Positions 22,801-43,500 of a DNA stretch of 64,000 nt are shown here, in pieces. Under the pieces are notes generated by a model that made no database searches, was not told the DNA's origin, and saw only the letters and a list, made by a program, of their open reading frames with translations. Position numbers and translations under genes: made by a program. Every line of letters starts with the position of its first letter. Position 1 is the stretch's first letter. Source of the stretch: Haplodiscus bocki. Lineage: Eukaryota. Location of the stretch: positions 8,928,001 to 8,992,000 of the forward strand of contig OZ296654.1 in the NCBI GenBank assembly GCA_965655095.1, given 5' to 3'.

Positions 22801-25460
22801 AAAAAAAAACAAGAATGCTCAACTGTAAGCTAAGCACAATTTGAAACCGCTGAAAAAACATCGATAATGTAATAGAAGAACTCATTATGGCGACTTTTGA
22901 CCAATTATTCGGAGTCAATTTGACAAACAAGTGACCAAATAGTGGCAGAGAACATTATGATCAGATGTCAATTTAAATACTTTTATCTTGTCAATTAAGC
23001 AAGCAAATGCAAGTTTTTTAAGAGAGTAGTGCTTTGAAAAGCGTTGAAAATTTTGTAGCCCTTTCCGGGATCACTCAAACCAAGTTATTTTCGGCAACGG
23101 TGAAATTTGTCTCACATGTTGACTATCTACTAACACACCCTGTATCAAAAAAGAGTTCATAGCTTCCTGTTATTTCATTTTTAATGGCGTTTAAATGTTT
23201 CTGACAAGTTCTATTTCTGTGCAATAACACCTTGAAACCGAGAGCCGAAAAAAGCTTCACACTTTCGAAACAAATTATTTCTAAAGACATTTTCAGGAAA
23301 AAAAAACCTGCAAAACAGGATTCGAATTCACTATTTTCGTCCAAAAACTCACAAAAAGTATTCACTACTGTTAGTCTTGGCTGGCCAGAAAACTGTCGCT
23401 GACACCGGCATCCGACACTCCGGAGAACTAAAAGTTTCGCAACCTGAAAAGTTTTCCATGTTCATGACTTCATTGATACTTAGTTAATGATTTTTTCCAA
23501 GGCTCGTTTTGATTCCGGAATAGCGGAACTACCGACAATTTACCGGCGTTCCTAGTGAGTTTATGGGCGTTTCATTTGAAAGTTTGGGGCGGCAGTGGCA
23601 TTTTCGCTTATATACCAACAAAAAAGCAGCGATCTCTCCGAAAAAAGACTGACCCGCGGAGCAGTCCGATTTGCCACCTTAATTTATTCGCCTTTTTGGC
23701 CTCCGTTACCTTTCTTGGTAGCACATAAAAACTTTCCACGTAGTCAGGCTCCGAACGGGATCTTGCGATGTTCCTAACACCCAAAAAAAAATCGAAAATT
23801 CAAGGTTTTTGCAACTTAGCGGATACGTCAACTTAGATCTGTTTCCGTGAATCCTGGTTCCTGGGTGGTCAGGGATGTAACCTTTTTAGAATCCGAGGCC
23901 GGGTAGGGTCCCGTTGCCGAGGTTAAATATTAGTCGATAAATTTTCATCTAGGTGCACTAGGGGTCTGGGAAGCCGATCTCGGGTCATACCCGATAGAAT
24001 TTATTCATAATTTGCATGCGGTCCTCAAATGGCGAGGTGAGAAAGGGGAGGAGGGAAAAAACTTTTTCCATTCACAACGTGATGAGTTATGACGGAATGA
24101 TCGTGTTTTTTGTCCCGATTTTGACTTCTCATCGCTTTAGTTCCACATCTACCCGATACAATTGGCCCAAATTTTGTGTGTGAGGCACAAATGATTTGAA
24201 CAATTTGCATGCCAAAAATTTTTGGCCCAGCTTTTTTTGTTCGGGAGATAGGCGCTGATGAATTTGTAAATTTTTGCAAAAAATGCGTCATTCCGTCATT
24301 TTTGATCGCCAAAACCAACTTTTTCTCGTATGCTAGCCTTCGCTAAGGATGCCAAAACTGAACCGGCAATTGATTTCGGTTAACCAGAAATTTTCGATCG
24401 AAATGCCGAAAAAAAATGACGGAAATGACGGATATTTTTGTGAGAAAAAAAAAATTTCCCGGGAAAGGATCGCTTTGCGCGTAAAAAGCGCCTAAAAACG
24501 CTGGAATTGATCGTTTTGCGCGTAAAATGCGGCTAACAATGCTTCGCAGCTTCTACACAAGTGGTCGTTGACACTTTGACAGTATTTTGTCTCATATGAC
24601 ACAGTTTTTTCAGCTAAACTCAAATTTAATCTAGTTAGGCGTTACTTATGTAAGTTATATTTTATAATCCTACATTTTTTCTCATCAAGTATAATGGCAT
24701 ACATAAAGTATATCTTGGATCAGGGCTCTTTGTTGGTTGTAGAATGCAATAGATGCTTCCATTACGTGTCATTCATTTTGAAAAATAAAAATAAAAGTTT
24801 TGGCAATAAGTTTTGCATTCCATTTCAATTGTTTGCCAGAAATTTTAAGTTTGTTATATTATTGTTCTGAGCATCTATGAGGTTCTTTCGTTTTCCTTGT
24901 TATGTTTTTTTGTAGAAATCAGCAGTGTTGGAACTTTCCACGTTTGCATTACGAGAGTTGAACCTCTTTCATGCCTTGTAAGTTGGAGTGTGTTATGTAA
25001 TTGTTAATTTTTTTGGTCAGTTTATGGTTGGCGTTCAACAAGCACCACTTTGGCATTCGACAAGGAATATTTTGAGAGTATACTTACTCAGCAGTTTGTT
25101 TTGTTTGGTGTACAACGCTAACAGTCCTCATTGTTTTGAATTTGAATCGTATTTAACTAATCATTTTTTCAAGTACTGCAAGTCTTGCTGAAATCACACA
25201 AGCATGGTATTTTCGGCATTAAAAACGAAAAGTCACTGAAGAGACAGTTAAAAATTCAACTGGTGAACTTCAAATATTCAATGCAGTGAATCTTTTGAAT
25301 TCAAATGATCCAACTGTTTTTGAAGTTCCTTTCGATAGAAGATTTTTCTGTAACGCATGTGGCTGTTTCAAAGCCTTCATTGACTGAGTTTTATAGATGT
25401 AGGCGCCGCCACTGAGTGTTGATGGGTGTACAGAGTTTTGACGAATCTCATTTTCAGAAA

Positions 25461-25763
25461 ATGGTTTACTCACTTTGTTTAACTTTGTTGATGATTTGGT
25501 CTTCTTTATGGACAGTTTTGGAAAAAGATGGAATTGTTTATGTGAACAATGTCGGAGAAGTCTTCAGCTCAGACGTCACCGTTGGGGAATTTTGTGTCTC
25601 TTTGTGTCTTCAGGATCACTTGCAGTTTATGAGGATCGGCAATTCTGATGAGGTTTCGATGACTCGCAGAATGTTACTTTTGTTTCTGTTGAGAAGTGGT
25701 ATAGAAACCAACCCTGGCCCGCCAAAAAAAAGAAATTGTGCAGAGAGCCCAGGAAATGCGTAA
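25461..25763 (+). CDS. Leader ORF with hydrophobic N-terminus and 2A-like (StopGo) motif; probably joined to the RepHel ORF by a -1 shift
   Basis: MVYSLCLTLLMIWSSLWTVL...RRMLLLFLLRSGIETNPGP-PKK. Conserved in copy 2, with 6 synonymous and 1 nonsynonymous change across the 2A-like segment. Confidence 0.7.
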   Translation: MVYSLCLTLLMIWSSLWTVLEKDGIVYVNNVGEVFSSDVTVGEFCVSLCLQDHLQFMRIGNSDEVSMTRRMLLLFLLRSGIETNPGPPKKRNCAESPGNA

Positions 25764-28700
25764 CATGTGGGCGTTTTTATGGCAGCAAAGACTGCTCCTG
25801 TTTCCAATCATCCATGGTAAAAGCCTCAGTTGGTGAAGACTATTTTGATCGGTCGCTGTTTTCTGCGCCATTCAATACCATGAGTCTTTTCTCGAACGTG
25901 CCGAATTCAACAGCTTTTTCATGCACAATCGCTAATTTGACGAGAATTTGCATTGTGTTTGGAATACCGTTTGTGGCAAAACCATTGAACACACACTTGT
26001 TGGGTGCCAAATCTTTGAACAGTTTGCATCCATCACAAACTCATCCTGTTCCAGGTGACGGTAATTGTTTGTTCTCTGCTTTAGCGGTGTCAATTGGGTC
26101 ACAATATTGGTATCATTCACAACTACGCCAGCGTATTTGTTTGGCTTTACCCTCCGTAGATATTGCTCCGCATTTTCTGGAAATTTACACAACCATTGAT
26201 GGAAATGTTGTGGTAGAGACAGCTTCAAACGTGAACGAATATTTGAATCGTTCCGGAATGAGATCGAATGGTGTGTATGGCACTTGTGTAGAGATCTATG
26301 CTTTCGCCCAAATTGCGGTGGCTGATGTTTACGTTTACCATTGCATGACAAAATTGTGGATAGTTTATAGCTATGCCGGAGATCGTGCTTCAATGGACGT
26401 TCCATCTGTCTTCCTGGTACATACTCATACAGGTAACCATTTTGAAACGGTAGCAGTGTTGTCGGCAGAAAATCCAAATTCACAGCAAAGTTTGCCTCAT
26501 GGTTGCGTCCAGAGTTCATTCCCAGATACGGCATCACAATGCAATGTGATTTCCGCGTCATTTCATGCGAACACTTCTGATCCAAAAGGTAGTGCGTGTT
26601 CTGAATTTAAAGTTTTGCCTCATTTGTGCGATGAAGGCCTCACATCACCCTCTGTTGGATTGGGCGGTATGCACAACGACCTTTTGTTGCCCAGCAACAG
26701 TTGTTTAAGCCTAGCGACAATTGAATGTGAAGAAAATGGTTCTAAGTGTGACCCGTTGAGCCCAGTTGTTTGCTTCAATGCCCTGCCTCAGGAGATTCAA
26801 TCCACGCAATCCGCACACAATGGCACAGCCACAATGATTATGAAGAAAGATAACGCCTGTCGTAATGAGGATGCCTCGAGTGACAATTGTGTTTTGACGT
26901 CCACTTTTTCAGCCGACAAAGCACAAAACAGAGAAATGTGCGGTAAATGTTGTCGAATTTCAACTCCTGCTTATCCTTTGCAATGGCAAACTCTTGAAAA
27001 AACAGCAATCAAACGAAGGAGATTTGGTTTGCGACCTACTGCTACCTGTCTGGTCTGCCAAAGTTGTTTCAATTACAATAATGGCGGAAATTGTTGGCGG
27101 TACGCTTGGCCTTCCGTGATTCATTCGTTACTGAAGGATCTCAGCATTCGAGATTGTACTATGAAAAAATTTGTTTCTTTTTTACCTCCCGAAATACGCG
27201 ACAGTTGGGCTATGTGTCAACATCTGCATCCTGCTGTTTCTATGGGTGATCCATCTGTTCTAGTTGATATAACAAAACGGAAGGAAGTTTTTCTGGACAA
27301 AATAAATTCGGGTAATTTCACTGATTTGGAGGAAGCCTTAGATAATGAATGTTATCCAAATTGTAGATGTCCCTTCGGTTGTTTCACATTTGTTGAAGAA
27401 ACAGGTCGAATCGGTTTCAACCACCTTGTAAATGGGATTTTGCCTTCATTCACATCGTTCAGCTCTGATTACTTGTACCATTTGCGAGGTGCAAGAGACG
27501 ATTGGTTGAAACCAATGAAAGTTTTGGATGCGTTTGATGTTTCCGGCTTTGTCAGTGTTAATGGGGCATATGGCCTTGTTATCGGAACTTGTGTGCAGCA
27601 TAACAATGGGTCTCACCTGCAGTATCTTCACCCGCCTGCACACCCGTCTCTGGGACGTCTCAGTGTTCCTACCAACGACAGATTAGCATTTGTTGCTCCA
27701 AATTTGCGTATTTTGAAGAATGCCAAAGCGAATTACGCTAGTCACACTTTCCAGTTGCTGAAAGCTGTCGGTAATTATTCAGGCATTAGTAGCATTCGCT
27801 TGAGCTCTCAACGCCGTTGGGATATTACTTCGGATCTGTTAGTGAAGGCGGAATCTCAATGTAGTTTTTACCGAAGCGATATTCAATATTTTTTGAATAG
27901 CTTAGTGTCCTCTGGCGAAATAACTGATGAAATCCGACAAGGCATTCAAAGTAAACCCAACATTGAACAATCGGCTGCTTGTCTTTCTGCGTCAACAAGC
28001 GTGTCAATTCTAGATACGTATCGTTTATTCAGTTCTCCTGGATTGACTGATGGACAACGCTTATGCGCAAAATTCAAGTCTGTGACGTTCGCTCAGCCTC
28101 CGAATTCGTTTGGTTCCTCTCCTCCAAAAATTTTGAGCTGCAAGACTCACTTTTTGTCGTTGTTGCAAACTTTATTTTGCATCTCTCCTCAACTGTGTCG
28201 ATCCATATCTGATTCAGCTGGTGTTGATAATGCGATTTTTCCTTTGCTGCAATTTTTGGACCCTGTAATTTTTCCAAGGTTCCGTCGCTGCACAAGGAAA
28301 ACTGTGGATGCGTCTATGAGTGATGGATTGTCGAAGTTGTTTACAAGATTTCCGGAAAGTCCATCTCGTTGTCTCAGTTTCGGTGTGTCACAATTTTGTG
28401 ATGATGTCATCCATGAAAACGTGGCAAGCCGTCAAGATATTTGGCATTTTTTGGAAGCTCAAGAATTTGAAGGTGTAAATGTCATACTTTTTTCATACGC
28501 GGGAGTAAATACTTTGCGTTCTAAATTCAAAGCTCCTCTGAACTTCCAAACTGCTCAGTCCGTTTTCGAGTTGAAATTTATTGCTACTGAAGGTTTAGCG
28601 ACTCGTAATAACATTCTTTTGAGGCATGGTGGTGTCTTTCAAAGTTTTTGGGTGTATAAAAGCAAAAGTATTTTTCCTGAACAGGTGAGGCTGCCTTGTG

Positions 28701-31700
28701 ATAGAGCGGTTGATCATTTTATTAATGACTATTGGAATATCTGTGTTTACTATCGACAGACCTTTGCCGATATTAGTGAGTTGCGGTCGAAATATTTTGA
28801 AACACTGGCAGGTCAAGGAAAATTCTTTTGTAAAAAGCATTCTCTGTTACTCACCCGTGATTTTCCTTCAAGTGGTTTCAAATGCTCATGTGGTAGAAGT
28901 TCTTTTTTACGTTGTCCAGTGTCTGGTTGTTTGGCAAGTGTTTGCAGGATGCATTCTGAAGATGAAAGTCAGGAAAAGCACTTTGTTTTTGATGGTAAAA
29001 AAAGGATCTTTGGTGAGTCCACAAAAAACTCAGCGTGCGGCTCAAGTCAGTTAGATGATTGTAGCTATAGCCGTGTTTCTGTCGATTCAGAGAATCGGTC
29101 CACATCGCCTACCAACACTGTCGCGTCCTCGGAATTTGTTACCAACCCTGGCCTTTTAGAGGAAGATTCTGAGGGATCGCATGTTTCGCTGCCTGTTACA
29201 ACTGCTGCTGGAGATTCAACTGTTGTTTTGGAACGTGATTTCCGAATAGACAGCACTGATTTTCAGCTCCCACTACATGTTTTATTGAATGGTCAATGCG
29301 GTTTACTGAAAAGGAGTAAAGGGTCTCCGTTGTATGTTGCAGCTAGACATAAGAGATTTCTGGAGAATATCACTGCAACGTCGCCCCCTAATTCTGTCCC
29401 TTTGCTTCAGTCGGAAGCCATGTTGTTTCCGTCCATCTTTTGGCACCAAAATACAGACGGCAGTTATTCGGGTGCAATACCGTCTCCTTTGTATAATGAT
29501 CACAAACAAAACGAATTGCTCGGCTTCGCTAGCTTAGAACAACATTTACAAACGCGCTTGAAAGATTCGTCTCTGTTGACGTCAACGGATCCTCGTTACG
29601 TCCAATACGTATTTGACACAATATTTAACCTACAGCTGCGTGTCAATGACACCAGAATAGTATTGAACAGAGGTTGGAGTGAAGCCGCTCGGCAACGAAA
29701 AAATGTACATGCCATGCGAGAAGGGGCAATTTTTTTTGATCAATGCGATTCTCGGAAGAATGTCAATGAATTGGGAGCAGCTTTGAAAGAACGACCAGCT
29801 ACATATTTTTTCACTTACACTTGTGGGCAGTCAACGCATCCTGGCTTGAGGAAGATTTTTAGTGCGTTGGACGCAAAGTTTCCGAAAGACGTCTGTAAAG
29901 AGGAGGTCCGAAAATCAGCGATTCAATCTGAAATGGTCACCATGTTGAGAGCGTGGGAACGAGCTTCTCGTCTTGTCATGAAGTACATTGAAACGTCACC
30001 CGAGCAGCCATTGGGAAAGGTTAATAAGATTTGGTATCGGTATGAGTTTCAAGATGAAGCTTGTGGGTTCCCTCATGTACATGCTTTGATTTGGACGGCA
30101 GAAGATTGCTTTAGTGAAGCAGTAAGGTCTAGAATTTGTTGCTCGGCAACAACGTTTCTGGGGAATTTATTGACTGAAGTTGGTTCGCACAATTATAGTT
30201 TGGATGAGTTGAACGAGTTACGAGATCTGTTCAACCGTTACCAATCACACAGCTGTTTTAAAGCTAAATTTCGTTGTCAGAAAAAAACTGACAAATTGAA
30301 AAGAAAAACGTGCCGCGTGCCCAAATACCCTCCTTCTGCTAATTTTACCTACAAATGTATTCACAAAGAACTGTCTGAGGAAACGATAGCAGTTTTGAAG
30401 AACATCGGATTAGCTGAGTCGAGTGACTTTGATTGTTCTGTCACCATTGATCAGCGCCTTTGTGGTGGCAAGCATCATTATCCAACAGAAAGTAACACGC
30501 ACACTTCTCCAACAAACGCCAAAATTTTTGCCCTCGTCCGATCTAGCACCAATCTACAAATTTGTGACATTTACATGAGTAGCCGTTATCTGTCAAAATA
30601 TGTTGCAGGCGTGGAGGAACGCGCCGAAGTTTCTATTTCTACGTCAAGTGCAACAGATTTGTATGACTTCCATGTTGATCAACAAGTGAACAACAAAATC
30701 GCTGGGGTATACTTGACCAATATGAGCAAGGAGGAAAAGCCAAAGAAAAAGTGTTTGAACTCTTGCATTTTGAGTTTAACGGAATCCGTGTGGTGGTCAT
30801 TGCGATTTCCTTACGTGGTGACCAATATACAATTCATTCATGTTGTCACTGCCCCGCGAGAGAAACGGGCTGGAATAGTCATTGAACCGAAATGCAGGCT
30901 TTCTAGTAGCAATCAGGGTCCTCTTTTTGGGCGCCAGAGTTCCATTAGACACAGCAAGGACTTTCCTCCTCACCGTTGCTTCACGGTTAATCAGAAGCTG
31001 CTGATAATTGATGCAGAAAAAAGTTCTCTTTCTCCAGACAAGATAACAGTTTTTGGTGTACGACCCCCTGAACTAACTTTTGTGCTCAAAGTGGAAAACT
31101 ATTTTACTTGGTTCTGCCGCTTCCGAAAGCCCTCAAAGTTGACACCAGAAAGTTTACTAAAGAGAAATGTAACCAAATCATATTGGGTGGATGGCCTCGG
31201 CTATTGCATATACCTTAATGCTTTGTACAAAGAAGCTTTTTTCAACTACTGTCGCAACTTTTCTAGTGGGGTCCGTCGTTTCTCCAGGCAATGTCATGAA
31301 GCCATTGCATGTACAACGAGCAGTTCAAGTCACAAGTTCATTTATGACAAAAAGGTTTGTCAAACTCAAGTAGTTTTATCGAACGTTGTTCCGAGGAACA
31401 CAACCAATTTTTTGACCCACATTCTGTTGTCTCTTGGAGAATACGTAACCGAACTTGACATTTTTTCTCAATCGAATATGAAATCTGCGTTCTTTGAGGC
31501 TTCTTTAGCGAGGTCTCATTTGGGATGCGAAGATTCCGAAGTTATTGATGTTGTTCGGCGCTTTGTGCTTGAACAATTACGCTATTATCCAGGATCATCT
31601 ACTTTACTAGATCGATTTGTTACGAGTGCCTATTTGTGCATCCAGCAAGCAGCACAAAATAATTCGGTCGTTTTTCCGTGCTCAACACCGCGCGTCTTAG

Positions 31701-33757
31701 AACAGAGTATTGTGCAGCAGAGTGACAGCAATATTTCACACGAATTAAATGCGCAGAAAGAGAGTCTTCTGTGTGCCATTGCCAATGGGGGTTATGTTGG
31801 TTTACCAACGTATGCAGAATTGATGAACGCCACCTTAGCACGTCCTTTTACTTGGAGCCAGAAGATACATAAAGCGCGCAACCAGACTGACGAATCATTG
31901 CATGATCAACAGAATATTTTGGATTACGTTTGTTCTTTGTACGATAATTATTGTTCTTGTACGACTGCCTTTATTAAACATCAGTTCATAGTTGGTCCAC
32001 CAGGTACAGGAAAGAGCCATGTGTTGATCCATTGTGTGATCGCGGCTCTAGCTAGGGGATTGAGATGCGTCATAACTAGTGTCGCTGCGGAGAGAGCTTC
32101 ACTTTTCGGCGGAAGACACATAAACGCTTTAATCCCTTTCCCTGTCGTTCAAAATGGAACGGTGACTCATCTAGTTTCGCATGCATTGAACACTCTTGCC
32201 CGAGATCCTCTAAAATTTACTTTTTTGGAGAGGTTGGATGTTTTATTTGTCGAGGAAGTCTCAATGATTTCAGCTGAACTTTGGTCCGCAATGGACAATG
32301 TGTTGCAAGCCGTGTCTGAAAACAATCTTCCTTTTGGAGGAAAGATTGTTATTTGCACAGGTGATTTTCGTCAACTTCCGCCTCCTACGGGAACGTTCCT
32401 TTTGCTGAGCAACTCGGTGTTAGCTAATTTCGAGGTTCGGTATTTGAAGCACTATGTGAGGATGCAGAACCAGCAAGGAAAGAGACTTCTGGATTTGCTG
32501 TCTGAATATCCTGTGACAGAAGCATGTATTAAGGAGTGTTGTGAGATCATTGACAAGTTCTGTATTTTTGTAAGCACGTGGACGGAAGTCCCTCTGGATA
32601 TTTTGAGAGTGTTCAGTACGCGAGTTGCGGAAAAAGAGGCCGTGGAAGAGAGAATATCGTTTGTGACAACACATCAAAACATACAGAGTGTGTCTTTCCA
32701 TTGCAAGGATGAAATGTCAAATACAGGAACCCAGAATTGGGTTACCGCAACAGCACCCGTCAGCAAGTTCCTCAACCGAAGTTGCCTTGAGCCAGAGTCT
32801 TTGTTTATACATGTTGGGTGTGTATTGCGCTTAACTTGCAATTTGCCATCGCTGAAACTGTTCCAGGGACAATTGTGTTTAGTTGAATCGTTCGATGAAA
32901 ATGATCCTCATATTGTTGTGAGAGTTGCACCAGCCGGAGTAAGGTCTGTGTCATCTAACAACCCGGACGTTAATTCCTGGAGACTTGTAGTTGTTCGTAA
33001 AAGAATTGGCGTTCTCCATAAGTATAGCAATTCTACCGTTTGCAGACGTGTTCAGTTTCCTTTGAAAATGTATGTGGCGTCAACGGTTCACAAAATAATG
33101 GGTGACACTGTTCCAAGCTTGGCAACACAGATTGTTGGTGGTAAAAAATTTTCCTACTGGCTGAAAGAGCAGCTTTATGTAGTTGTTAGTCGGGTCACTG
33201 ATCTTTCCCATATAACGTTTGTCGGTGACAAGCAGCGTACACTTGATGCAATTCTTCTTCTTTGCCGCAAAGATAGCCATTTGGTACCTTTGATAGATAA
33301 CTTTTTGTCGTCTCGTGGCAGTTGTAATTCCGGTGTTTCAGCGATCCAGACATTTTATCCCTTTCCCTTACGTGTTTTTGATGTACCCCTTTCGGCAATT
33401 GGTTACTGTTATTTGTTGGTGAGCGTTAAACGCAGGGAACTTTTTTACATTGGAAGCTGTAAGACGTTGCGGCGACGATTGCAGGAGCATAATTCGGGAA
33501 ATGCGAGCGCATTTACAAAGCCTGTTGAAAGAAGACCCTGGGCTTTAGTTGCTTACGTGACGGGGTTTTCCAACGCTGTTTCCCGAAGCCGTTACTCTTT
33601 CGAACAGGATTGGCAAAGAGCAATGGTTAATCACAAATATTCGAATGTGATGCTAACGCTTGCAGATTACTTGTCAGAATGCCATGTTCTTATGGATTTG
33701 TATAAAGTTACAGGTATCGAAACAGCCCTGGAATGTGATTGCATGCAGAATTTTTAG
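25736..33757 (+). CDS. RepHel polyprotein: OTU protease, Cys-rich regions, HUH Rep, PIF1-family helicase, C-terminal GIY-YIG nuclease
   Basis: OTU: VPGDGNCLFSAL...NHFETV. Rep motifs: YFFTYTC, YEFQDEACGFPHVHALIW, YLSKYV. Helicase: GPPGTGKS, EEVSMIS, PFGGKIVICTGDFRQLPP, RVQFPL..STVHKIMG, QLYVVVSRV. GIY-YIG: GYCYLL...FYIGSCKTLRRRLQEHN...RRPW...FEQDW. Confidence 0.92.
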   Translation: MCREPRKCVTCGRFYGSKDCSCFQSSMVKASVGEDYFDRSLFSAPFNTMSLFSNVPNSTAFSCTIANLTRICIVFGIPFVAKPLNTHLLGAKSLNSLHPSQTHPVPGDGNCLFSALAVSIGSQYWYHSQLRQRICLALPSVDIAPHFLEIYTTIDGNVVVETASNVNEYLNRSGMRSNGVYGTCVEIYAFAQIAVADVYVYHCMTKLWIVYSYAGDRASMDVPSVFLVHTHTGNHFETVAVLSAENPNSQQSLPHGCVQSSFPDTASQCNVISASFHANTSDPKGSACSEFKVLPHLCDEGLTSPSVGLGGMHNDLLLPSNSCLSLATIECEENGSKCDPLSPVVCFNALPQEIQSTQSAHNGTATMIMKKDNACRNEDASSDNCVLTSTFSADKAQNREMCGKCCRISTPAYPLQWQTLEKTAIKRRRFGLRPTATCLVCQSCFNYNNGGNCWRYAWPSVIHSLLKDLSIRDCTMKKFVSFLPPEIRDSWAMCQHLHPAVSMGDPSVLVDITKRKEVFLDKINSGNFTDLEEALDNECYPNCRCPFGCFTFVEETGRIGFNHLVNGILPSFTSFSSDYLYHLRGARDDWLKPMKVLDAFDVSGFVSVNGAYGLVIGTCVQHNNGSHLQYLHPPAHPSLGRLSVPTNDRLAFVAPNLRILKNAKANYASHTFQLLKAVGNYSGISSIRLSSQRRWDITSDLLVKAESQCSFYRSDIQYFLNSLVSSGEITDEIRQGIQSKPNIEQSAACLSASTSVSILDTYRLFSSPGLTDGQRLCAKFKSVTFAQPPNSFGSSPPKILSCKTHFLSLLQTLFCISPQLCRSISDSAGVDNAIFPLLQFLDPVIFPRFRRCTRKTVDASMSDGLSKLFTRFPESPSRCLSFGVSQFCDDVIHENVASRQDIWHFLEAQEFEGVNVILFSYAGVNTLRSKFKAPLNFQTAQSVFELKFIATEGLATRNNILLRHGGVFQSFWVYKSKSIFPEQVRLPCDRAVDHFINDYWNICVYYRQTFADISELRSKYFETLAGQGKFFCKKHSLLLTRDFPSSGFKCSCGRSSFLRCPVSGCLASVCRMHSEDESQEKHFVFDGKKRIFGESTKNSACGSSQLDDCSYSRVSVDSENRSTSPTNTVASSEFVTNPGLLEEDSEGSHVSLPVTTAAGDSTVVLERDFRIDSTDFQLPLHVLLNGQCGLLKRSKGSPLYVAARHKRFLENITATSPPNSVPLLQSEAMLFPSIFWHQNTDGSYSGAIPSPLYNDHKQNELLGFASLEQHLQTRLKDSSLLTSTDPRYVQYVFDTIFNLQLRVNDTRIVLNRGWSEAARQRKNVHAMREGAIFFDQCDSRKNVNELGAALKERPATYFFTYTCGQSTHPGLRKIFSALDAKFPKDVCKEEVRKSAIQSEMVTMLRAWERASRLVMKYIETSPEQPLGKVNKIWYRYEFQDEACGFPHVHALIWTAEDCFSEAVRSRICCSATTFLGNLLTEVGSHNYSLDELNELRDLFNRYQSHSCFKAKFRCQKKTDKLKRKTCRVPKYPPSANFTYKCIHKELSEETIAVLKNIGLAESSDFDCSVTIDQRLCGGKHHYPTESNTHTSPTNAKIFALVRSSTNLQICDIYMSSRYLSKYVAGVEERAEVSISTSSATDLYDFHVDQQVNNKIAGVYLTNMSKEEKPKKKCLNSCILSLTESVWWSLRFPYVVTNIQFIHVVTAPREKRAGIVIEPKCRLSSSNQGPLFGRQSSIRHSKDFPPHRCFTVNQKLLIIDAEKSSLSPDKITVFGVRPPELTFVLKVENYFTWFCRFRKPSKLTPESLLKRNVTKSYWVDGLGYCIYLNALYKEAFFNYCRNFSSGVRRFSRQCHEAIACTTSSSSHKFIYDKKVCQTQVVLSNVVPRNTTNFLTHILLSLGEYVTELDIFSQSNMKSAFFEASLARSHLGCEDSEVIDVVRRFVLEQLRYYPGSSTLLDRFVTSAYLCIQQAAQNNSVVFPCSTPRVLEQSIVQQSDSNISHELNAQKESLLCAIANGGYVGLPTYAELMNATLARPFTWSQKIHKARNQTDESLHDQQNILDYVCSLYDNYCSCTTAFIKHQFIVGPPGTGKSHVLIHCVIAALARGLRCVITSVAAERASLFGGRHINALIPFPVVQNGTVTHLVSHALNTLARDPLKFTFLERLDVLFVEEVSMISAELWSAMDNVLQAVSENNLPFGGKIVICTGDFRQLPPPTGTFLLLSNSVLANFEVRYLKHYVRMQNQQGKRLLDLLSEYPVTEACIKECCEIIDKFCIFVSTWTEVPLDILRVFSTRVAEKEAVEERISFVTTHQNIQSVSFHCKDEMSNTGTQNWVTATAPVSKFLNRSCLEPESLFIHVGCVLRLTCNLPSLKLFQGQLCLVESFDENDPHIVVRVAPAGVRSVSSNNPDVNSWRLVVVRKRIGVLHKYSNSTVCRRVQFPLKMYVASTVHKIMGDTVPSLATQIVGGKKFSYWLKEQLYVVVSRVTDLSHITFVGDKQRTLDAILLLCRKDSHLVPLIDNFLSSRGSCNSGVSAIQTFYPFPLRVFDVPLSAIGYCYLLVSVKRRELFYIGSCKTLRRRLQEHNSGNASAFTKPVERRPWALVAYVTGFSNAVSRSRYSFEQDWQRAMVNHKYSNVMLTLADYLSECHVLMDLYKVTGIETALECDCMQNF

Positions 33758-35099
33758 TGTTTATTTGATTGTTCATATGTAATTGTCTACAACGATTTAG
33801 ACTTTTGTAAAACTGCCATCGAGAAAACCGATTGTATTTCAAAAGTATTCCTGAACATTGGTTTGTCCGAAACCAACTTTTCAGCAAATAATTTTTGTAG
33901 CCAATCATGTTGATTGATTTGATTCTTTGCCATTGTTTGCTGTTGGTTTTGAGCCAACCTTTGAAAAAGAGGATGTGTTGTAATAGTTGGAAGATTAATT
34001 TTGTAACGGGATGTCGTTTTCATTTTTATCACCTTTTCGTTGGACTCACTGAGTAACTTTGTTTAGATTCGTGATCGAACTTTTATGCTATGATACTTTA
34101 TGGAATAACGTACACAATTATATCACACGGTAATTGAAAGAATCATACAATCCTTTTCCGCCATAATTTGTTTTGACATGTGTCTGTAATTACACTGAAG
34201 GAGCTGTTTTGATGTTTTTGGGAGATTGTTTCCAATATTTCAGACGCTATAGGGGTTTAACTTTTTGTTCGGTAATCAGTGCAGAAATTTATTGAAAAAA
34301 TTGTCAACTGCAAGAGAATGTGACGGGGTTTCTACAATGTGACATTGCTGTTTATGTTTTGTGATTGTATCACTGACTGTGAGCTGTTTTAGATGTTAAT
34401 TCTGACTCATATAATGATTTATTTTTTTTTATAGCTGACGGAGGCAATTTGGCTTTCATGTTTTGTTTTGCTGGTTGCTCAGCAACCGCCGACGCAAGTT
34501 CTCAATTAGAATGTTGTTTGTTAGATGAACGTATATGAGTTGGTTGTCCAGCAACCCATGTTCTACAAACTGGCCTGGAAACATAAAGAGATAGCAGCGG
34601 AGTTCATTTGTAGCGCGGCACCTTTCAAATCCATTCCATATTCCTTGTTACGGAAGCTGTGAACACTTTTTCTTTCAAGTCATTAAACGCTCTATCATTT
34701 GTTTTATGAGAAGCTTTTTTATTATCGTTACTTTTGTGAATTGAAGTGTTTCACCACTATGTACTTCTTTGCAGCGATTAAAGAGGGGCTCTTATTTCGT
34801 GCATATCGAGTTGTTTGAGTGAGATTTTCATTCTTCGGGTATGTGGCTATTGTATTTTTTATAAAATTTCCTTTCCTCAAAGAACATTTCTGATTTTTGA
34901 CCGTATTGACGACTCTGTAGCTGTGTGACCGTTGTGAATTTTTGTTTGACTTCGTTTTTGTTCTAATAAGCAAATGACATGAATGAAAGGAGATTCTGGA
35001 GTTTGAGTAGGTTTTTCTAATTGCAAAGTAAACAATATAAAGTATGTTTCGTTCGTTTGTTTGTTTTCATAATACATTGTCTTTCGGTTTCCGGTTGTT

Positions 35100-36032
35100 A
35101 TGTCTGAATATTTTGTTTTGGCGGCCTCTTCCCTTTATTGGGCAGCTCAGGAGAAACCTTACCTCTTTGATCCTTTCAAGTCACAATTTTGTGCAATTTC
35201 TGGTGCTTCGCTAAATAACTACCAACCAGAAAAAAACATTTGTTATCTTCTTCAATCGAATTCCTGCAACACTAATGGAAGAAAGGTTATCATTTGGCAT
35301 GATGCTGTCAATAACTCTTTGTCAAGCAAGAAGAATCCGGCAATGAGTCCTGAGGCTTTTTTCAGTAAACTGGCGTACTTGAGAAAATTCAATGTCGTGG
35401 CTTTTTCCTACTTACCACGATCAGGAGCGCATAATTTAAACGAGCTCTTGGAAAATTGTCCAACAGGAATTATTTTTTTGAAAATGAAATCGATTCTATC
35501 AAAACGGTACAAACTTTTACTTGATGAAAGTAACGATCTGCACCTGAATAGCTTGTTAGAGAATCATATGCTATCCAGAACACTGTTGAACAATGGTTTG
35601 CAGGATTTGACTTTGCGTCGGTGCCGCAATAGACGCAATAATCTCCGAAACAAAGTTAGTGTTTTAGTTTTTGGTTTCTGTTTTATTGACAATTTCGAAG
35701 ATAAGCAGCAACATATTTTTGCCACAATTTTTGAAAGAAAACCGGAACGTTAGTGATTACACGGTTGATGCATTTAACATCCGAACCAAGTGAGTAGATA
35801 CAAATTTCGTGCATAACATATTCACTTTACTCAGTGTCAATAGTTTAAAGTTTTTGGTAACCAAATCCGGAGTTGGAAGAGTTAACTGGAGAGTTTTTTA
35901 TGCTTCAATAACAGCACTTGCTTGTTTTCACGATTCATCGTGAAAACAAGCAAGTCCTCTGCGAACTATTTCAAGATTATCTGTTTCTTGCAGGTCAAAA
36001 GAAACAGATGTGAGTTTCACGAATCGGCATAG
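35100..36032 (+). CDS. SGNH-hydrolase-like protein, two exons (35100-35654, 35994-36032)
   Basis: Blocks resemble SGNH I/II/III/V: VLAASSL, AISGASL, VIIWHDAVNN, DLHLN. Donor GTTAGT (35655) and acceptor CAG (35993) are conserved in copy 2, as is the terminal exon (VKRNRCEFHESA* vs VRRNRGGLHESA*). Confidence 0.6.
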
Positions 36033-36696
36033 GCATCAATTACCGCGAGCTCCATGAAGATAACTTGATGATTAGGAAGTCCGTCGGTGTTTTAACACCG
36101 CGTGAATATTTGTAATGCGGTCATTTCTGTCATGATTTGGTGTTATTGTTTAATTGCACTATTTGTGCTGCCATATGGTTTTTAAATGTAAAAAATGAAT
36201 TGGCAATATTGCATTCATTTAGTTGAACTATGATTTTACATTTGATGATGTTATTTGAAGCTGAACGCTTTTTTGGCATTTTGTTTATATCCTTTTGGCA
36301 TGCAGGTTTTTTTACTGGAATCTGTTGTAAATTGTTTTGTTTTTGGAAATAGAAATAGTTCAGAGGAAATTCAGTTTAATGTACTATCTGTGTTTCAATT
36401 TATATGTTTTCGGTATGCGACCAATTTTTGACTTGGAGTGGAAAACTGTTTTGAGGACACACCCGATAAATGACTGCAGATTCAGTTGATTCCAGACAAA
36501 GTGTACCATAGACGGGACTGAAGAGTTGCTAGGCTTTAATAAAAAAACGGATTTTCTAAAGTTTTCTTTCATCAAAAATTTTTCTTTGTTCATTGGGCGT
36601 TTTTCCGTTTGAGAGAAATCAGACTGCAAATCTTGACTTGTGTTTTTTATCGTGTACTTCCTCGTTTGAAACACATCCTTTTGCATTTTTTAAGAA

Positions 36697-37689
36697 ATGA
36701 ATAGACAAGTAACTGTTGCTGAAGTTACAGGCGAAGGTTTCCTGCGCAACAGCCAGAACACTGTAATAAGGGGGATAGTTTTGGTTCTGAAAAAAAGTGA
36801 TCGGCCACTTCAGTTGTTTAGACCTCAAGCTACAAAATTGAAACGACCACTTCCTGAAGGGACATATGACAGAATGGCTATTATTGGTCAATGGAATAGT
36901 AAAGATTGTTTTGTCGTCATCTCAGTTTCCGCGCAGAAGTCTGCTAAACTGTTTTCGGATCGTCATCTGACTGTTGGTTCTGTTGTAGAGGTTACAGAGC
37001 CTATATATTCGAACACGTGTTTAGGGAATGACAAAAATAATCCGATTATTGAAACTCATCAGGCGATCGTTGTTATCAATAACGTAAGCAATGAGGATTT
37101 TCCGCCAATTCCAATTATTTCCCTACCGAGCACGCCCGCAATGTTCCATTACACTCTCAACAGTAGAAATTTGTTGTTTTTGCATGGAAACATTATATCA
37201 CCTACGTGTTCTGGAAGTATGTGCGACCGTCGTATTCTCAGAAATGAAACGGTGTGCGCTTGCTTACACAAGAATTCAGTTTCGTCGTGGACTGTCGCCG
37301 CACGCATCATTTCTAGGGACGTGGAAGAAGAAGCGGACGATCCCCTGAGCGGAGACATGACCCAAAGTCATCAGTTGGCATCGTTCTTTTGCAGCAATGA
37401 CGTTCTTCGATTGCCAGCTAGCTCGGTTGAATTGAATCTGTTGCGTGAATCAATGACTAGGGTGACAGCATATGTCAACGATAATGGTGGTTGGAGAATA
37501 TCTGGCTACAGCAAATCCAGTGTCAGTGATGAGTCAATTACTCAAGCTGTTCATCATGTGCGAATTTGTCGTCTTATGCCAGCTTCGGTAATCCCGAACA
37601 ACTTGAAGTACACTATTGGTAATGCTCGGCAACCGCCCAATCGGCCACCTCCACTACAGCATGCCAACCCGAATGTTCAGCACGATTGA
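36697..37689 (+). CDS. 330-aa element-encoded protein with Cys cluster, possibly OB-fold/RPA-like ssDNA-binding
   Basis: Intact ORF conserved in copy 2 with many synonymous changes; beta-rich N-terminal part (IRGIVLVLK, LTVGSVVEVTEP), CSGSMCDRR...CAC cluster, Pro-rich tail. The function is an inference. Confidence 0.7.
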   Translation: MNRQVTVAEVTGEGFLRNSQNTVIRGIVLVLKKSDRPLQLFRPQATKLKRPLPEGTYDRMAIIGQWNSKDCFVVISVSAQKSAKLFSDRHLTVGSVVEVTEPIYSNTCLGNDKNNPIIETHQAIVVINNVSNEDFPPIPIISLPSTPAMFHYTLNSRNLLFLHGNIISPTCSGSMCDRRILRNETVCACLHKNSVSSWTVAARIISRDVEEEADDPLSGDMTQSHQLASFFCSNDVLRLPASSVELNLLRESMTRVTAYVNDNGGWRISGYSKSSVSDESITQAVHHVRICRLMPASVIPNNLKYTIGNARQPPNRPPPLQHANPNVQHD

Positions 37690-40504
37690 TTTGTTATGGA
37701 TTTTTCAAAATCCCCTACGGATATGTGCTTTTTGAAGTCGAATGAGAATGAACATATAGAAGGATGTTCCTTTTTGAAAGTTTCACATCTATTGTTATTC
37801 TGTAGTGCCGTCGATGAATTCAACGCAGTTGCCTTAGCAACTCAACTTTACATGGTCTCTTTTACATTTAAACCTTCTTTCCACAAACTTTACAATGAAA
37901 CAAACAACTGTTTTTCTCTCACCTAAATAAATCTTGTTTCGTTATGGCAGTACCCTGCATTATTCTCTGTAAAGTAGTTCGATTTACTTCAATAATCCAC
38001 GTTGAAGGTTTTATGAAATTTTCACTACGCTTTTCAATGTTAGTAAAGCACTTTGGAAGTAATTTTCTTAAGTCAGTGGCCTCTCAATAATGATGCTATC
38101 ATTAGTATTAGAAGATATATTTGCTCCAATTTGTCAAGATATTGATAAATTTAACGTACTCAAATTAGATAGGAACTTTTGGTTCGCGATTTGCCTCGTG
38201 TTCAAATAGTTTACTCATAAAGTTGGAGGAACAAATGAAAATACTTTGAAAGTGTTCAAAGTTCTAAAAGAGATTCACTGTGAATAGCAACGATTTATAG
38301 TTTGCATGAGCCGTGAAGTCATTTCGATGTCCCAAGTCAGTGGTACGCTCACAGAAGTCTATGTTGTCTTTGTTCAAAATGTCGCAGTGATTAAACGGAG
38401 ATGAAATTCTCGTTTAAAATAAGACAGTAAAGAAGGTTGAGCGAATTTTGCAGTGTGTGAGCCTCGTTTTGCTATGTAGACATATCGATCTTTTAGGAAC
38501 ATTTATAAATGGGAAAACGTGTAGGAGCTTTGAAATTTTTCATAAACAGCTGTTTTGAGTTTTATGTTTCTTCTCAAAATTTAATTGTTATTTTTGGACC
38601 TGGTTTTTTCAATAGGAGTTGGAAAAAGTTCTTTTACTCAGGGGTTTTTCTTTGATAAAGTCGGATCTATTTTTCCGTTTTGGCTATTGTTGTTCATTTC
38701 TTGAACGGTTTTAGCTTCTGTTCTGTTGAGATTGAGAGTTAATTTTTTTTACTTTTATGACAAAACTCCATTTCAGTTGGTGTCCACAGATACCTATCCA
38801 ACATTCACTGGGCCTCTCTAGCGAACGGTACCTTTGCCTCCACTGGGTGGTCAGGGATGTAACCTTTTCAGAATCCGAGGCCGGGGAGGGTCCCGCAGCC
38901 GAGGTTAAATAATAATACGGTAAAAATACATCATACCGCATGGGGGGACTGGGAAGCCGATCTCGGGTCCTACCCGATAGAATTTATTCATATTTTGCAT
39001 GCGGTCCTAAAATGGCGAGGTAAGAAAGGGGAGGAGGGAAAAAACTTTTTCCATTCACAGCGTGATGAGATATGACGGAATGATCGTGTTTTTTGCCCCA
39101 AATTTGAATTCTCATCGCTCTAGTTCCACATCTACCCGATACAATTGGCCCAAATTTTGTGTGTGAGGCAGAAATGATTTGAACAATTTGCATGCCAAAA
39201 ATTTTTGGCCCAGCCCTTTTCGTTCGGGAAATAGGCGCTGATAAATTTTTAGATTTTTGCAAAAAATGCGTCATTCCGTCATTTTTGATCGCCAAAAACA
39301 ACTATTTCTCGTGCGCTAGCCTTCGCGAAGGGAGCCAAAACTGAACCGGCAATTGATTTTGATTCGCCAAAAATTTTCGGCCAGAATGCCGAAAAAAAAT
39401 GACGGATATGACGGGAAGAAAATGACGGAAATGACGGATTTTTTTTCAAAAAAAAAATTTTTTTTTCGGAAATGTTCTTTTTTGCGCGTAGAATGCGCCT
39501 AACAATGTTACACAGTCTATAGACCAGTGATTGTTGACAGTTTGACCGTAGTATACCTCGTATGAGATGTTTTTTTGGGAAACACAATTTTGAACTGGTT
39601 AGGCATTACTGATGTAACCTACCATTTTTTCATTCATACATTTTTTTCAAATTAAGTACAATGTCATACATATTTTAAATCTCGGATCAGAGCTCTCTGT
39701 TGGTTGTGGAATGTAAAAGGTGCTTCCAATATATGTCAAGCCTCTTGAAAATAGAAAAAAAATTGCAGTTTTTTGCATTCAATTTCAATTATTTTTGCAA
39801 GAAATTTTGAGTGTGTTGTATTATTGTTCTCAGCAAATTAGACGTTCTTTCGTTTTTCCCATTCAAGTTTGTTCGTAGAAACTAGCAGTGTATGTTTTTT
39901 TCAGGGTTGCATTGCATGGGTTGAACTTCTTTTTGGGCAGTGTACGTTGGAGTGTGTTATGTATTTGTTAAACGTTGCAGTGCCTTATGTATTTGTTAAC
40001 TGGTTGGACAGTTTATAGTTGGCGTTCAACAAGAATTACTTTGGCAATCGACAAATTTTACATGGGGACTACATTTACGCATGAGGTTGTTTTGTTTGGT
40101 GTCCAACACCAAAACTCCTCAGTCTGTTATGGTTTTGAAACGTTTTTAACTAATCGTTTTTTTTCAACTACTCAAAGTCTTGCTGAAATCAGCTATGCAT
40201 GGTAGCTTCGCCATTAAAAGGGAAGTCTAGAATGAAAAGGTTAATAAATTAATTGATGAAGTTCATTTATTTATTTGACTCAATAATTTGAATTCAATTG
40301 TTCATTCACAGAATGAAAAGTATGTATTTGGGTCAGTTTTGATCTTTACATAGGCTATCCTCTGAGATTTTGAAATTCTTTTCCACAGACTGCTTCGGTG
40401 TAATGCATCTGGCTTTTGAAAACTTTTCCTCCACTGAATTTTGTAGATGTAGGCTCCGCCACTGAGTGTTTGTACAAAGTCTTGACGAATCCCTTTTTCA
40501 GAAA

Positions 40505-43500
40505 ATGGTGTACTCAGTTTGTTTAACTTTGTTGATGATTTGCTCTTGCTTATCGACCGTTTTGGGAAAAGATGGACTTCTTCCTGTGAACAATGTTGGA
40601 CAAGTCTCCAGCTCAGACGTCACCGTTAAGGAATTTTATGTTTCGGTGTTTCTTCATGATCAGTTGCAGTTCTTGAGGACCGCTAATTCTGGTGATGTTT
40701 CGATGACTCGCAGAATGTTACTTCTGTTTCTCTTGAGGAGTGGTATAGAAACTAACTCTGGTCCGCCGAAAAAAAGAAATTTTGCAGAGAGCCCAGGAGG
40801 TGCGTAACGTGTGGGCGTTTCTATGGCAGCAAGGACTGCTCTTGTTTCCATTCATTCATTGAAAGAGCCTCAGCTGGTGAAGACTATATTGATCGGTCGC
40901 TGTCTTCGGCGCCTTTCAATAACCTGAGTCTTTTCTCGAACGTGCCGAATTCAATAGCTTTTTCTTGCGCAAACGCTAATTTGACGAGAGTTTGCATTGA
41001 TTTTGGAATACCGTTTGTGGGGACACCACTGAACACACACTTGTTGAGTGCCATTTCTTTGAACGGTTTGTTTCCATCACAAACTCATCCTGTTCCAGGT
41101 GACGGTAATTGTTTGTTCTCTGCTTTAGCGGTGTCAATTGGGTCGCAAGCTTGGTATCATTCAAAACTGCGCCAGCGTATTTGTTTGGCTTTACCCTCCG
41201 TAGATATTGCTCCGCATTTTCTGGAAATTTACACAACCATTGATAGAAATTTTGTGGTACAGACAGCTTCAAACGTGAACGAATAATTGAATCGTTCCGG
41301 ATTGCGATCGAATGGTGTGTATGGGACTTGTGTAGAGATCTATGGCTTCGTCCAAATTGCGGTGGTTGATGTTTACGTTTACCATTGCATGACAAAATTG
41401 TGGATAGTGTATAGCTATGCCGGAGATCGTGCTACAGTGGACGTTCCATCTGTGTTCCTGGTACATACTCATGCAGGTAATCATTTTGAAACGGTAGCAG
41501 TGTTGTCCGCAGAAATTCCAACTTCACAGCAAATTTTGCCTCATGGTTGCGTCCAGACTTCATTCCCAGATACGGCATCACAATGCAATCTGATTTCCGC
41601 GTCAATTGATGCGAACACTTGTGCTCCAAAATGTAGCGCGTGTTCTGAATGTGATGTTTTGCCTCATTTGTGCAATGAAGGCCTCAAATCAAGCTCTCTT
41701 GGATTGGGCGGTATCCACAACGATCTTTTGTTGCCCGGCAACAATTTTTTAAGCGGAGCGAAAATTGATTGTGAAAAAAATGTTTCCAGTTGTGTTGCAT
41801 TCAGCCCAGGCGTTGCCTTCAATTCCCTGCCTCAGCAGATCCATTCCACGCAATCCACTTACAATGACACAGCCACAATGATAGAGGAGAAAAATGAGGT
41901 CAGTCATCATGCGGATGCCTCGGGTAGCTCGTGTGTTTTCACGTCTACTTTTTCAGCCGACAAAGTACAAAGTACAGAAATGTGCAATAAATGTTGTCGA
42001 ATTTCAACTTCTGCTTATCCTTTGGAATGGCAAAGTCTTGAAAAAAAAGCAGTCAAACGAAGAAGATTTGGTTTGCGACCTACTGCTACATGTTTGGTCT
42101 GCCAAAGTTGTTTCAATTACAATAACGACGGAAATTGTTGGCGGCATGCTTGGGCTTCCGTAATTCATTCGTTACTGAAGGATCTCAGCATTTGAGATGG
42201 TACTAATAAAAAACTTGTTTCTTTTTTACCTCCCGAAATACGTGACAGTTGGGCTATGTGTCAACATTTGCATCCTGCTGTTTCTATGGCTGATCGAGCT
42301 GTTCTAGTTGATATAACAAAACGGAAGCAAGTTTTTCTGAACAAAGTAAATTCGGGTGTTTTCACTGATTTGGAGGAAGCCTTAGATAGTGAATGTTATC
42401 CAAATTGTAGATGTCCCTTCGGTTGTTTCACATTTGTTGAAGAAACCGGTCAAATCGGTTTCAACCACCTTGTAAATGGAATTTTGCCTTCATTCACATC
42501 GTTCAACTCTGATTACTTGAACCATTTGCGAGGTGCAAGAGACGATTGGTTGAAACCAATGAAAGTCTTGGATGCGTTTGATGTTTCCGGCTTTGTCAGT
42601 GTGCACGAGGCATATGGCCTTGTTGTAGGAACTTGTGTCAGTCATAACAATGGGTCTCAGCTGCAATAACTTCACCCGCCTGCGCACCCGTCTCTAGGAC
42701 GGCTCAGTGTTCCTACCAACGACAGATTGGCATTTGTTGCTCCAAATTTGCGTATATTGAAGAACGCCAAAGCTAATTACGCTAGTCACACTTTCCAGTT
42801 GTTGAAAGCTGTTGGTAATTATTCAGGAATTAGCAGCATTCGGTTGAGCTCTAAACGCCGTTGGGATATTACTTCGGATTTGTTGAACAAGGCTGAATCC
42901 CAATGCAGTTTTTACCGCAGCGATATTCAATATTTTTTGAATAACTTAGTGTCCTCTGGCGAAATAACTGATGAAATCCGACAAGGCATTCAAAGTAAAC
43001 CCAACATTGAACAATCGGCTGCTTGTCTTTCTGCGTCAACAAGCGTGTCAATTCTAGATACTTATCGTTTATTCAGTTCACCTGGATTATCTGATGGACA
43101 ACGCTTGTGCGCAAAATTCAAGTCTGTCACGTTCGGTCAGCCTCCCAATTTTTTTGGTTCTTCTCCTCCAAAAATTTGGAGCTCCAAGACTTACTTTTTG
43201 TCGTTGCTGCAAACATTATTTTGTATCTCTCCTCAACTGTGTCGATCTTTATCAGATGCAGCTGCTGTTGATAATGCGATATTTACTTTGATGCATCTTT
43301 TGGACCCTGTAATTTTCCCGAGGTTGCGTCGCTGCAAAAGAAAAACTGTGGATGCTTCTATGAGTGATGAACTGTCCAAGTTGTTTACTAGATTTCCGGA
43401 AAGTCCATCTTGTTGCCTCAGTTACGGTATCTCACAATTTTGTGATGATGTCATCCATGAAGACCTAGCAAGCAGTCAAGACATTTTGCCTTTTTTGGAA

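Follow-up and report, generated by a model that had tools for sequence, protein, structure and literature searches.

Two abutting Helitron-type elements in a 64-kb window

What kind of mobile element forms the two ~15-kb units that lie head to tail in a 64,000-nucleotide stretch of the Haplodiscus bocki genome, and how did the two come to abut? The stretch (contig OZ296654.1 of assembly GCA_965655095.1, positions 8,928,001 to 8,992,000, forward strand) is referred to below as the window, and coordinates are those of the window unless another locus is named. We conclude that copies 1 and 2 are probably independently inserted, autonomous Helitron-type rolling-circle transposons from a deep clade that combines a GIY-YIG nuclease with SGNH and RPA-like genes. 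A broader proposal, which we regard as evenly balanced between true and false, is that they represent a third major lineage of eukaryotic Helitron-like transposons: one hexanucleotide, CT[G/A]GGT, would serve as left cleavage site, right terminus and target, families would stack at one another's ends, the transposase would carry a StopGo leader, and an SLX1-like GIY-YIG nuclease would finish the reaction.

All open reading frames (ORFs) of both units lie on the + strand, and the one-strand, three-gene unit of ~15 kb that an earlier, sequence-only reading of this DNA had described at 23861/23867-38848 is present as claimed. Copy 1, of subfamily A, measures 14,982 or 14,988 bp depending on whether its start is set at 23867 or 23861. 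It is 99.1-99.4% identical to copies at other loci (99.4% for locus L004). Copy 2, of subfamily B, shares 87% identity with copy 1 and 98% with a copy in L003, a different locus; read in the frames of copy 1 it contains six stops in gene 1, two in gene 2 and two in gene 3. Because each copy has closer relatives elsewhere and the two share only 87% identity, we consider them separate insertions of two subfamilies rather than products of a local duplication. A 22-nt junction string, CTGGGTGGTCAGGGATGTAACC, occurs at 23861 and 38843 and at no other site, against a chance expectation of 0, and the flanks on either side of the array show no similarity to the elements fetched from other loci.

Table 1 Features of the array in the window
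Feature	Position	Strand	Description
Flanking CTGGGT	23861..23866	+	Inferred target hexamer; unique DNA directly left of the array
Copy 1 (subfamily A)	23867..38848	+	Near-intact autonomous element; ends from junction comparison
5' terminus	23867..23920	+	GGTCAGGG, then two short hairpins (the second GGCCGGG-loop-CCCG..GCC)
Leader, hydrophobic N-terminus	25422..25721	+	Ends in 2A-like GIETNPGP
A-run	25724..25731	+	8 A; sets leader and main ORF in different frames in copy 1
Main ORF of gene 1	25736..33757	+	2673 codons as listed; run resembling a nuclear localization signal (NLS) plus CxxC, OTU, Rep, PIF1, GIY-YIG
OTU-like cysteine protease domain	26051..26449	+	Cys box GDGNCLF, His box GNHFET
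HUH Rep endonuclease	29792..30610	+	Motif I YFFTYTC, HUH PHVH, two-tyrosine RYLSKY; Pfam Helitron_like_N
PIF1-type superfamily-1 helicase	31964..33241	+	Walker A GPPGTGKS; Pfam PIF1 E 4e-13
C-terminal GIY-YIG nuclease, closest to SLX1	33401..33622	+	Pfam GIY-YIG (PF01541) E 5e-9; motifs YCYLL, FYIGS, QEHN
Gene 2, predicted SGNH/GDSL-type hydrolase	35100..35753	+	Single ORF, 217 aa
Gene 3, predicted RPA-like multi-OB single-strand-DNA-binding protein	36697..37689	+	330 aa; Cys4-type cluster C171, C176, C187, C189
3' terminus of copy 1	38836..38848	+	GCCTCCA-CTGGGT, abutting the 5' end of copy 2; terminus seen in several families
Copy 2 (subfamily B)	38849..53902	+	15,054 bp, decayed; directly abuts copy 1

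Gene 1 encodes a Rep-helicase with a C-terminal GIY-YIG nuclease

Three Pfam families, PIF1, GIY-YIG and Helitron_like_N, match the gene 1 protein above their cut-offs. The OTU match falls slightly short, at 22 bits against the 23.3 required, but both catalytic boxes are present and the Cys box is kept in 18 relatives. The domain order OTU-Rep(HUH)-PIF1-GIY-YIG read earlier from the sequence is borne out to this extent. The Rep motifs (FFTYTC, PHVH and RYLSKY) recur throughout the family and align with the corresponding motifs of Helitron and Helentron proteins. Among solved structures, PIF1 enzymes match the helicase with E values of 1e-15 to 1e-9, while the match to Helraiser (7LCC) is confined to the helicase part (E 1e-7). 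The arrangement of an HUH Rep, with motif I, the HUH motif and two tyrosines, N-terminal to a PIF1-type helicase places copy 1 among Helitron-like elements in the broad sense.

SLX1 structures match the C-terminus of the protein (E 1e-8), and most family members carry the GIY-YIG domain. With PF01541 matched and PF03372 (AP/EEP endonuclease) absent from the protein, the GIY-YIG domain takes the place of an apurinic/apyrimidinic (AP) endonuclease, as had been proposed. DUF6570 (PF20209) finds no match in the window protein even at E values up to 1. Between OTU and Rep, ~950 residues carry no domain assignment; this middle part, the leader, gene 2 and gene 3 all gave no usable match in Pfam.

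A hexanucleotide ends the element and probably marks its insertion site

Junctions in nine further loci define the termini of the family as 5'-GGTC(A/C)GGG ... GCCTCCA(N0-3)CT(G/A)GGT-3'. At the left, GGT(C/T)NGGG is invariant in 13 5' ends from several families and samples, and the hairpins that follow show compensatory changes at some pairs. At the right, CTGGGT appears in the window at 23861-23866, 38843-38848 and 53897-53902, the third site being the right edge of copy 2. Ends of this kind match neither the 5'-TC terminus and A-T insertion site nor the T-T site with terminal inverted repeats, in agreement with the earlier description of them as non-canonical. A search for terminal or subterminal inverted repeats, comparing the first 100 with the last 120 nt of seven elements, gave no exact match of at least 7 nt beyond shuffled sequences.

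Junctions between different families show to which element the hexamer belongs. In L004, the element next after an A-type copy with CTGGGT at its end is of the GGTCCGGG type, copies of which end in CTAGGT; the same A-type copy has CTAGGT on its left and CTGGGT on its right. The hexamer variant, CTGGGT or CTAGGT, thus follows the upstream element. On the strength of these heterologous junctions we assign the hexamer to the upstream 3' end, with the joint lying within the shared GGT-GGTC; the differing variants on the two sides of one copy argue against a 6-bp target duplication. The L004 junctions disfavour two other readings of the hexamer that we considered: that it belongs to the 5' end, and that it is a duplicated target. 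The sequence-only reading had CTGGGT bound the unit, and all three occurrences are indeed in place; they do not form a symmetric boundary, however, and represent a 3' terminus and a matching target site.

The window array has unique DNA on both sides, so the hexamer can be seen in a flank that is not itself an element: the left flank ends ...CTGGGT, and the right flank begins CTCAAA / CTCAAAAG. A relative from another sample is likewise preceded by CTGGGT in unrelated DNA. For CT(G/A)GGT to end a unique left flank by chance has a probability of ~2/4096 per case, and the cases come from two samples. From these junctions we infer insertion directly 3' of CT(G/A)GGT. Resident 3' ends, and the target hexamer that survives each insertion, would therefore become new targets, and end-to-end stacks would result.

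The same head-to-tail order could also arise by replication read-through, tandem duplication or unequal crossing-over, with no preferred insertion site involved. L001 fits such an origin: it holds at least three tandem copies, each ~99% identical to copy 1, and one of its junctions resembles an internal deletion of 439 bp. The neighbours in the window, however, are 13% diverged and each has its closer relative at another locus, and in L003, L004, L010 and L011 unrelated short families (1-2 kb; sizes seen 1.05, 1.43 and 2.1 kb) join the 15-kb copies at the identical nucleotide. We therefore consider local amplification an unlikely source of the order, and favour repeated insertion behind the hexamer.

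Some further features of these loci may be recorded here. The left junction of L001 (8023-8029 of that locus) was considered as an insertion at an internal site and rejected; it reads as a 439-bp deletion with microhomology, and the joint lacks the last 436 bp of the upstream copy. Short non-coding elements of ~1.05, 1.43 and 2.1 kb with the same terminal motifs stack with 15-kb copies in L003 (262-4474 and 19526-20612), L004 (19168-22029), L008, L010 and L011, and one short family starts with GGTCA(A/C)GCTTTTTAGC in place of GGTCAGGG. Motif searches did not find the 3' end of the relative in L005 or the ends of that in L006.

The Rep-helicase falls outside both sampled Helitron groups

A word-index search with the gene 1 protein returned 49 full-length relatives (E values of 0 to 1e-45). 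All of them are unnamed and come from ENA, Logan or JGI. Helentrons with DUF6570 and an AP endonuclease matched at E 1e-16 or worse, over no more than 30% of the query. None of the 49 family members has DUF6570 in its precomputed Pfam list, and 27 of the Helentron-type matches carry it. Two trees each contain a branch, supported at 100% in the Shimodaira-Hasegawa-like approximate likelihood ratio test (SH-aLRT), that sets the GIY-YIG family against the remaining sequences; the second tree recovers the DUF6570 group at 99% and a group with four maize Helitron proteins at 88%. The sequences thus point to a Rep-helicase clade that stands apart from both sampled groups, the DUF6570-bearing Helentron/Helitron2 (HLE2) elements and the maize-type Helitrons (HLE1, of which the sample is small). 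A new lineage is plausible. Our literature search found no paper describing this lineage, and other group names gave nothing relevant. The undescribed lineage that the earlier reading had suggested stands as a separate clade in these trees, while the recoding, splicing and virus-like details attached to it were only partly right.

The closest resemblance in layout is to Helentron/Helitron2 elements, which share the large Rep-helicase polyprotein with OTU upstream and a nuclease at the C-terminus, a hairpin at the 5' end, and non-autonomous derivatives with the same ends; RPA-like genes are optional there. An ordinary HLE2 element that has captured a GIY-YIG domain must therefore be weighed. 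The order of OTU, Rep-helicase and nuclease mirrors that of Helentrons, a 5' terminal hairpin is a Helitron2 trait (PMC3627910), and one such capture is on record: the HELIANO paper mentions GIY-YIG once, as a 'captured' domain of the HLE2 family HelenSM92 of Sphagnum magellanicum, which uses TT sites, and lists no SGNH domain (PMC11417382). We found no other report of GIY-YIG within an element of the Helitron type. HelenSM92 differs in that it is described as belonging to HLE2, with terminal inverted repeats that are short and insertion at TT (PMC11417382), whereas here the domain is the conserved C-terminus of a whole clade. Moreover, DUF6570 upstream of Rep is the marker of HLE2 (PMC11417382) and gives no match here; the nuclease is SLX1-like and not an AP endonuclease; and a long, fully supported branch separates the family from the DUF6570 group. 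The asymmetric or subterminal inverted repeats of ~8-18 nt known from Helentron/Helitron2 are not seen, since none of 7 nt or more exceeds chance. The flanks do not show insertion between two T residues in T-rich sites, and the left flank in another sample also reads CTGGGT. On this evidence a captured domain in an ordinary HLE2 element is improbable, and we retain a clade of its own as the reading.

Canonical Helitrons such as those of maize and Helraiser share with the window elements a two-tyrosine HUH Rep fused to a PIF1 helicase and the lack of inverted terminal repeats. CT(G/A)GGT even holds CTRR as its first four bases, if the cut lies two bases in. The 5'-TC...CTRR ends and insertion between A and T are nevertheless not what we find: the 5' end here is GGTC.. 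(or GT..), the flanks are not A and T, and OTU and GIY-YIG come in addition. Nor does the Rep-helicase group with theirs, the maize-containing group and the GIY-YIG family lying on opposite sides of the 100% branch, with a small HLE1 sample.

A likeness of logic exists with bacterial HUH transposons. IS91/ISCR and IS200/IS605 insert directly 3' of a short specific target that also serves as the cleavage site of one end; they make no target duplication and move through single-strand or rolling-circle intermediates. Unlike the elements described here, they are prokaryotic and small and have no helicase fusion.

A 2A-like leader precedes the transposase

Upstream of the main ORF of gene 1, and in another frame, lies an ORF that ends ...LLRSGIETNPGP (25698-25721). 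In six diverged relatives from other samples (P0002-5, P0008 and P0031; 43-60% identity) the hydrophobic leader and the motif are in frame with the main ORF, and in each of them a basic, NLS-like run follows directly; family members that lack the leader begin at this run. An in-frame leader with [GCN][IVL]E[STAP]NPGP is found in P0002-5, P0008, P0031, P0085 and P0091. The leader itself has a ratio of nonsynonymous to synonymous substitution (dN/dS) of 0.4-0.5. As leader and motif recur in frame in diverged relatives and are then followed by the basic run, the 2A-like motif is conserved and probably functional. A D-to-Q variant of such a motif was active in one retrotransposon context (PMC3708506). 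In copy 2 (40760-40790) the core of the motif reads NSGP, and the close relative in L003 keeps NPGP.

The change of frame in copy 1 occurs at the A-run. An ENA contig of the same locus (ctg86933; same flanks, 99.1% identity) has 9 A and one continuous ORF of 2778 codons, and among seven copies the run is 8, 9 or 10 A long. We read the difference as an unstable homopolymer or an assembly difference and reject a programmed frameshift, because the run lengths vary among the seven copies and the relatives are in frame. Programmed frameshifting or transcriptional slippage, with a -1 change that regulates transposase output, would draw on the slippery heptamer A_AAA_AAA in the leader frame and on the recurrence of 8-A copies (copies 1 and 2 of the window and the middle copy of L001). 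Set against the 9-A assembly, the mixture of all three lengths, the single frame of the six diverged relatives and the fact that homopolymer length is the commonest long-read assembly error, it is highly unlikely, and an unstable run is the explanation we keep. Of the StopGo leader shifted into the main ORF that the sequence-only reading had proposed, the leader and its motif therefore stand and the shift does not. Frameshift expression of gene 1 has to be dropped. The statement that copy 1 has no visible disabling lesion has to go as well, given that leader and main ORF sit in different frames in the window copy.

The nearest parallels are APE-type non-long-terminal-repeat (non-LTR) retrotransposons with N-terminal 2A-like sequences (PMC3708506) and 2A-like signal sequences (PMC4981915). 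There too, in marine invertebrates, ...ExNPGP follows a hydrophobic stretch and sits ~50-160 residues into the protein that carries out transposition. The element in the window is, by contrast, a DNA rolling-circle transposon, with G, C or N in place of the canonical D. We found no literature linking 2A-like motifs to Helitrons; as far as that literature shows, such a conserved leader would be without precedent among DNA transposons.

Two accessory genes are conserved and under selection

Gene 2 has no Pfam match. An alignment of 11 sequences, made from the conserved start Met, shows Ser11, Gly35, Asn72 and His148 to be invariant. The predicted structure (predicted local distance difference test, pLDDT, 79.5) has GDSL-like lipases and PAF-AH as its top folds, with probability 1.0 and template-modelling (TM) scores of ~0.5 (3p94, 4ppy). 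The invariant Ser, Gly, Asn and His of blocks I, II, III and V, together with the modelled flavodoxin-like fold, identify gene 2 as a predicted SGNH hydrolase. The SGNH-like gene noticed earlier is thus present as a 217-aa ORF. Splicing, which had been suggested for it, is not needed and we reject it, since the complete fold runs from the conserved Met within one ORF here and in its relatives, 11 homologues in all.

Gene 3 has more than 150 homologues; a Pfam search with 60 of them gave no match (0/60), RPA families included. In the Cys cluster, C171, C176 and C187 do not vary, and C189 hardly does. Its predicted structure (pLDDT 90) leads Foldseek to RPA, CST and Teb1 with probability above 0.9, and the individual domains reach VIA Z values of 8.5-9.6 against the oligonucleotide-binding (OB) folds of TEBP-alpha, Teb1, RPA70 and MCM10. 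By its modelled fold, then, gene 3 would be an RPA-like tandem-OB protein, and the Cys cluster fits a zinc ribbon of the RPA70 DBD-C type, with zinc a presumed ligand. The 330-aa Cys-cluster ORF of the earlier reading can thereby be refined to an RPA-like protein, an accessory type already known from Helitrons. Profile and structure searches of each ORF, as that reading had suggested, thus give gene 1 its domains by Pfam and genes 2 and 3 their SGNH and OB folds.

Genes 2 and 3 also lie downstream of the Rep-helicase in L005 and L006, from two other samples, and gene 3 recurs in L008 and L009. Fish Helitrons with texim SGNH hydrolase genes (PMC4021074) offer a precedent for an SGNH gene that travels with a Helitron-type element; here, in distinction, the gene is conserved beside the Rep-helicase in at least three samples.

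Purifying selection acts on all three genes. Coding parts of copies 1 and 2 are 87-95% identical and free of indels, whereas non-coding parts are 73-80% identical with indels. Between copy 1 and subfamily B, an intergenic control gives a dN/dS of 0.99. The main ORF of gene 1 has 0.27 (0.18 for its Rep-helicase-GIY part), gene 2 has 0.23-0.27 and gene 3 has 0.09-0.11.

Divergence between subfamilies A and B is low in the first 600 bp (90% identity) and in the OTU-coding part (dS ~0.11), at 23867-24440 and 25736-26635. Elsewhere in gene 1 dS is 0.22-0.26, and the remaining non-coding DNA is ~75% identical. The contrast suggests constraint on the DNA itself or exchange between the subfamilies.

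That the copies are integrated forms of a virus-like rolling-circle episome, as the term 'virus-like' in the earlier reading might suggest, is very remote: 15 kb with three conserved genes, high contig coverage for some arrays and a distant relative, 26% identical, whose metagenome scaffolds recur at ~26 kb and contain numerous ORFs lacking Pfam matches would suit it, but the 15-kb unit has no capsid-like, packaging, polymerase or other viral gene, the copies are chromosomal with unique flanks, short non-coding derivatives share their ends in the fashion of transposons, and single-protein scans of IMG/VR found no close relatives. The scaffolds in question are L007 (ENA ERZ28654116 scaffold_487) and the P0045 cluster, which occur in many samples and carry the 26%-identical Rep-helicase-GIY-YIG protein; the other large ORFs of L007 (1718, 595, 463, 410, 376 and 323 aa) have no Pfam match, and L007 may represent a replicon of its own or an element of greater length.

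A model for insertion and stacking

For transposons of this clade we propose the following course. Rep would nick directly 3' of CT(G/A)GGT at three places: the left junction (flank hexamer followed by GGTC...), the element's own 3' end and the target. The helicase would unwind 5' to 3', and the RPA-like protein would coat the displaced strand. Either this strand or a circular form whose joint reads ...CTGGGT-GGTCAGGG... (...GCCTCCACTGGGT-GGTCAGGG...) would be joined just after a target CT(G/A)GGT. With a hexamer at the end of each resident copy and the original target hexamer surviving, new copies would enter at old ends, and the stacks would grow in one direction. Cleavage of the second strand or of a branched intermediate, which has been proposed as the role of the Helentron AP endonuclease, probably falls here to the GIY-YIG nuclease. 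The 2A-like motif probably frees the hydrophobic leader during translation, leaving a transposase that would start at Pro and continue into the basic NLS-like run.

Several points weigh against our main conclusion and the insertion model that goes with it. The junctions and the outer flanks of the window array, with no empty site seen, bound the cut only to CTG^G^G^T^, and the choice of target rests on two unique-flank cases and the stacks. Homogeneous arrays such as L001 could also come from read-through replication or unequal exchange. Canonical Helitrons have a hairpin ~10-20 nt before the 3' end, and no consistent 3' hairpin was found here: the last 70 nt of subfamily A do not fold better than shuffled sequences (z +1.9), and one short family has a strong hairpin (z -2.8). 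The trees are unrooted quick-search trees with SH-aLRT support only, HLE1 is represented by 11 sequences, and the Repbase and Dfam sets lie outside them. The structural model of gene 2 was built on 11 sequences, and the 2A-like motif has G, C or N at the position of the canonical D.

If the proposal is true, a third deep group would be added to the present two-group split of Helitron-like elements, which is drawn by ends, targets and the Rep-helicase tree. It would bring a different nuclease, a hexamer-specific insertion site and conserved helpers in the form of an SGNH hydrolase and an RPA-like binder. It would also provide a concrete, testable route from transposon to tandem array, and a nick site common to both ends and the target would offer a simple substrate for the biochemistry of a eukaryotic HUH transposase.

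Other repeats in the window

Three further repeat structures lie outside the array. Diverged repeats of ~85-150 bp occupy 59513-63829 at spacings of 177, 717, 1085 and 2361 bp and show no Helitron-like end motifs. At 13410-15586 lies an element of ~2.2 kb whose inverted ends consist of 15-bp tandem repeats, GTCAAAATCTCCTAA, each with 7-8 copies; between these ends is a 246-aa ORF (13775-14515) that has a FLYWCH zinc-finger domain. A second inverted pair of 15-bp tandem-repeat blocks (ATTTGCTACTAGG..), at 3992-4079 and 5141-5241 and ~1.1 kb apart, looks like a small, non-coding counterpart of the FLYWCH element, built in the same way.

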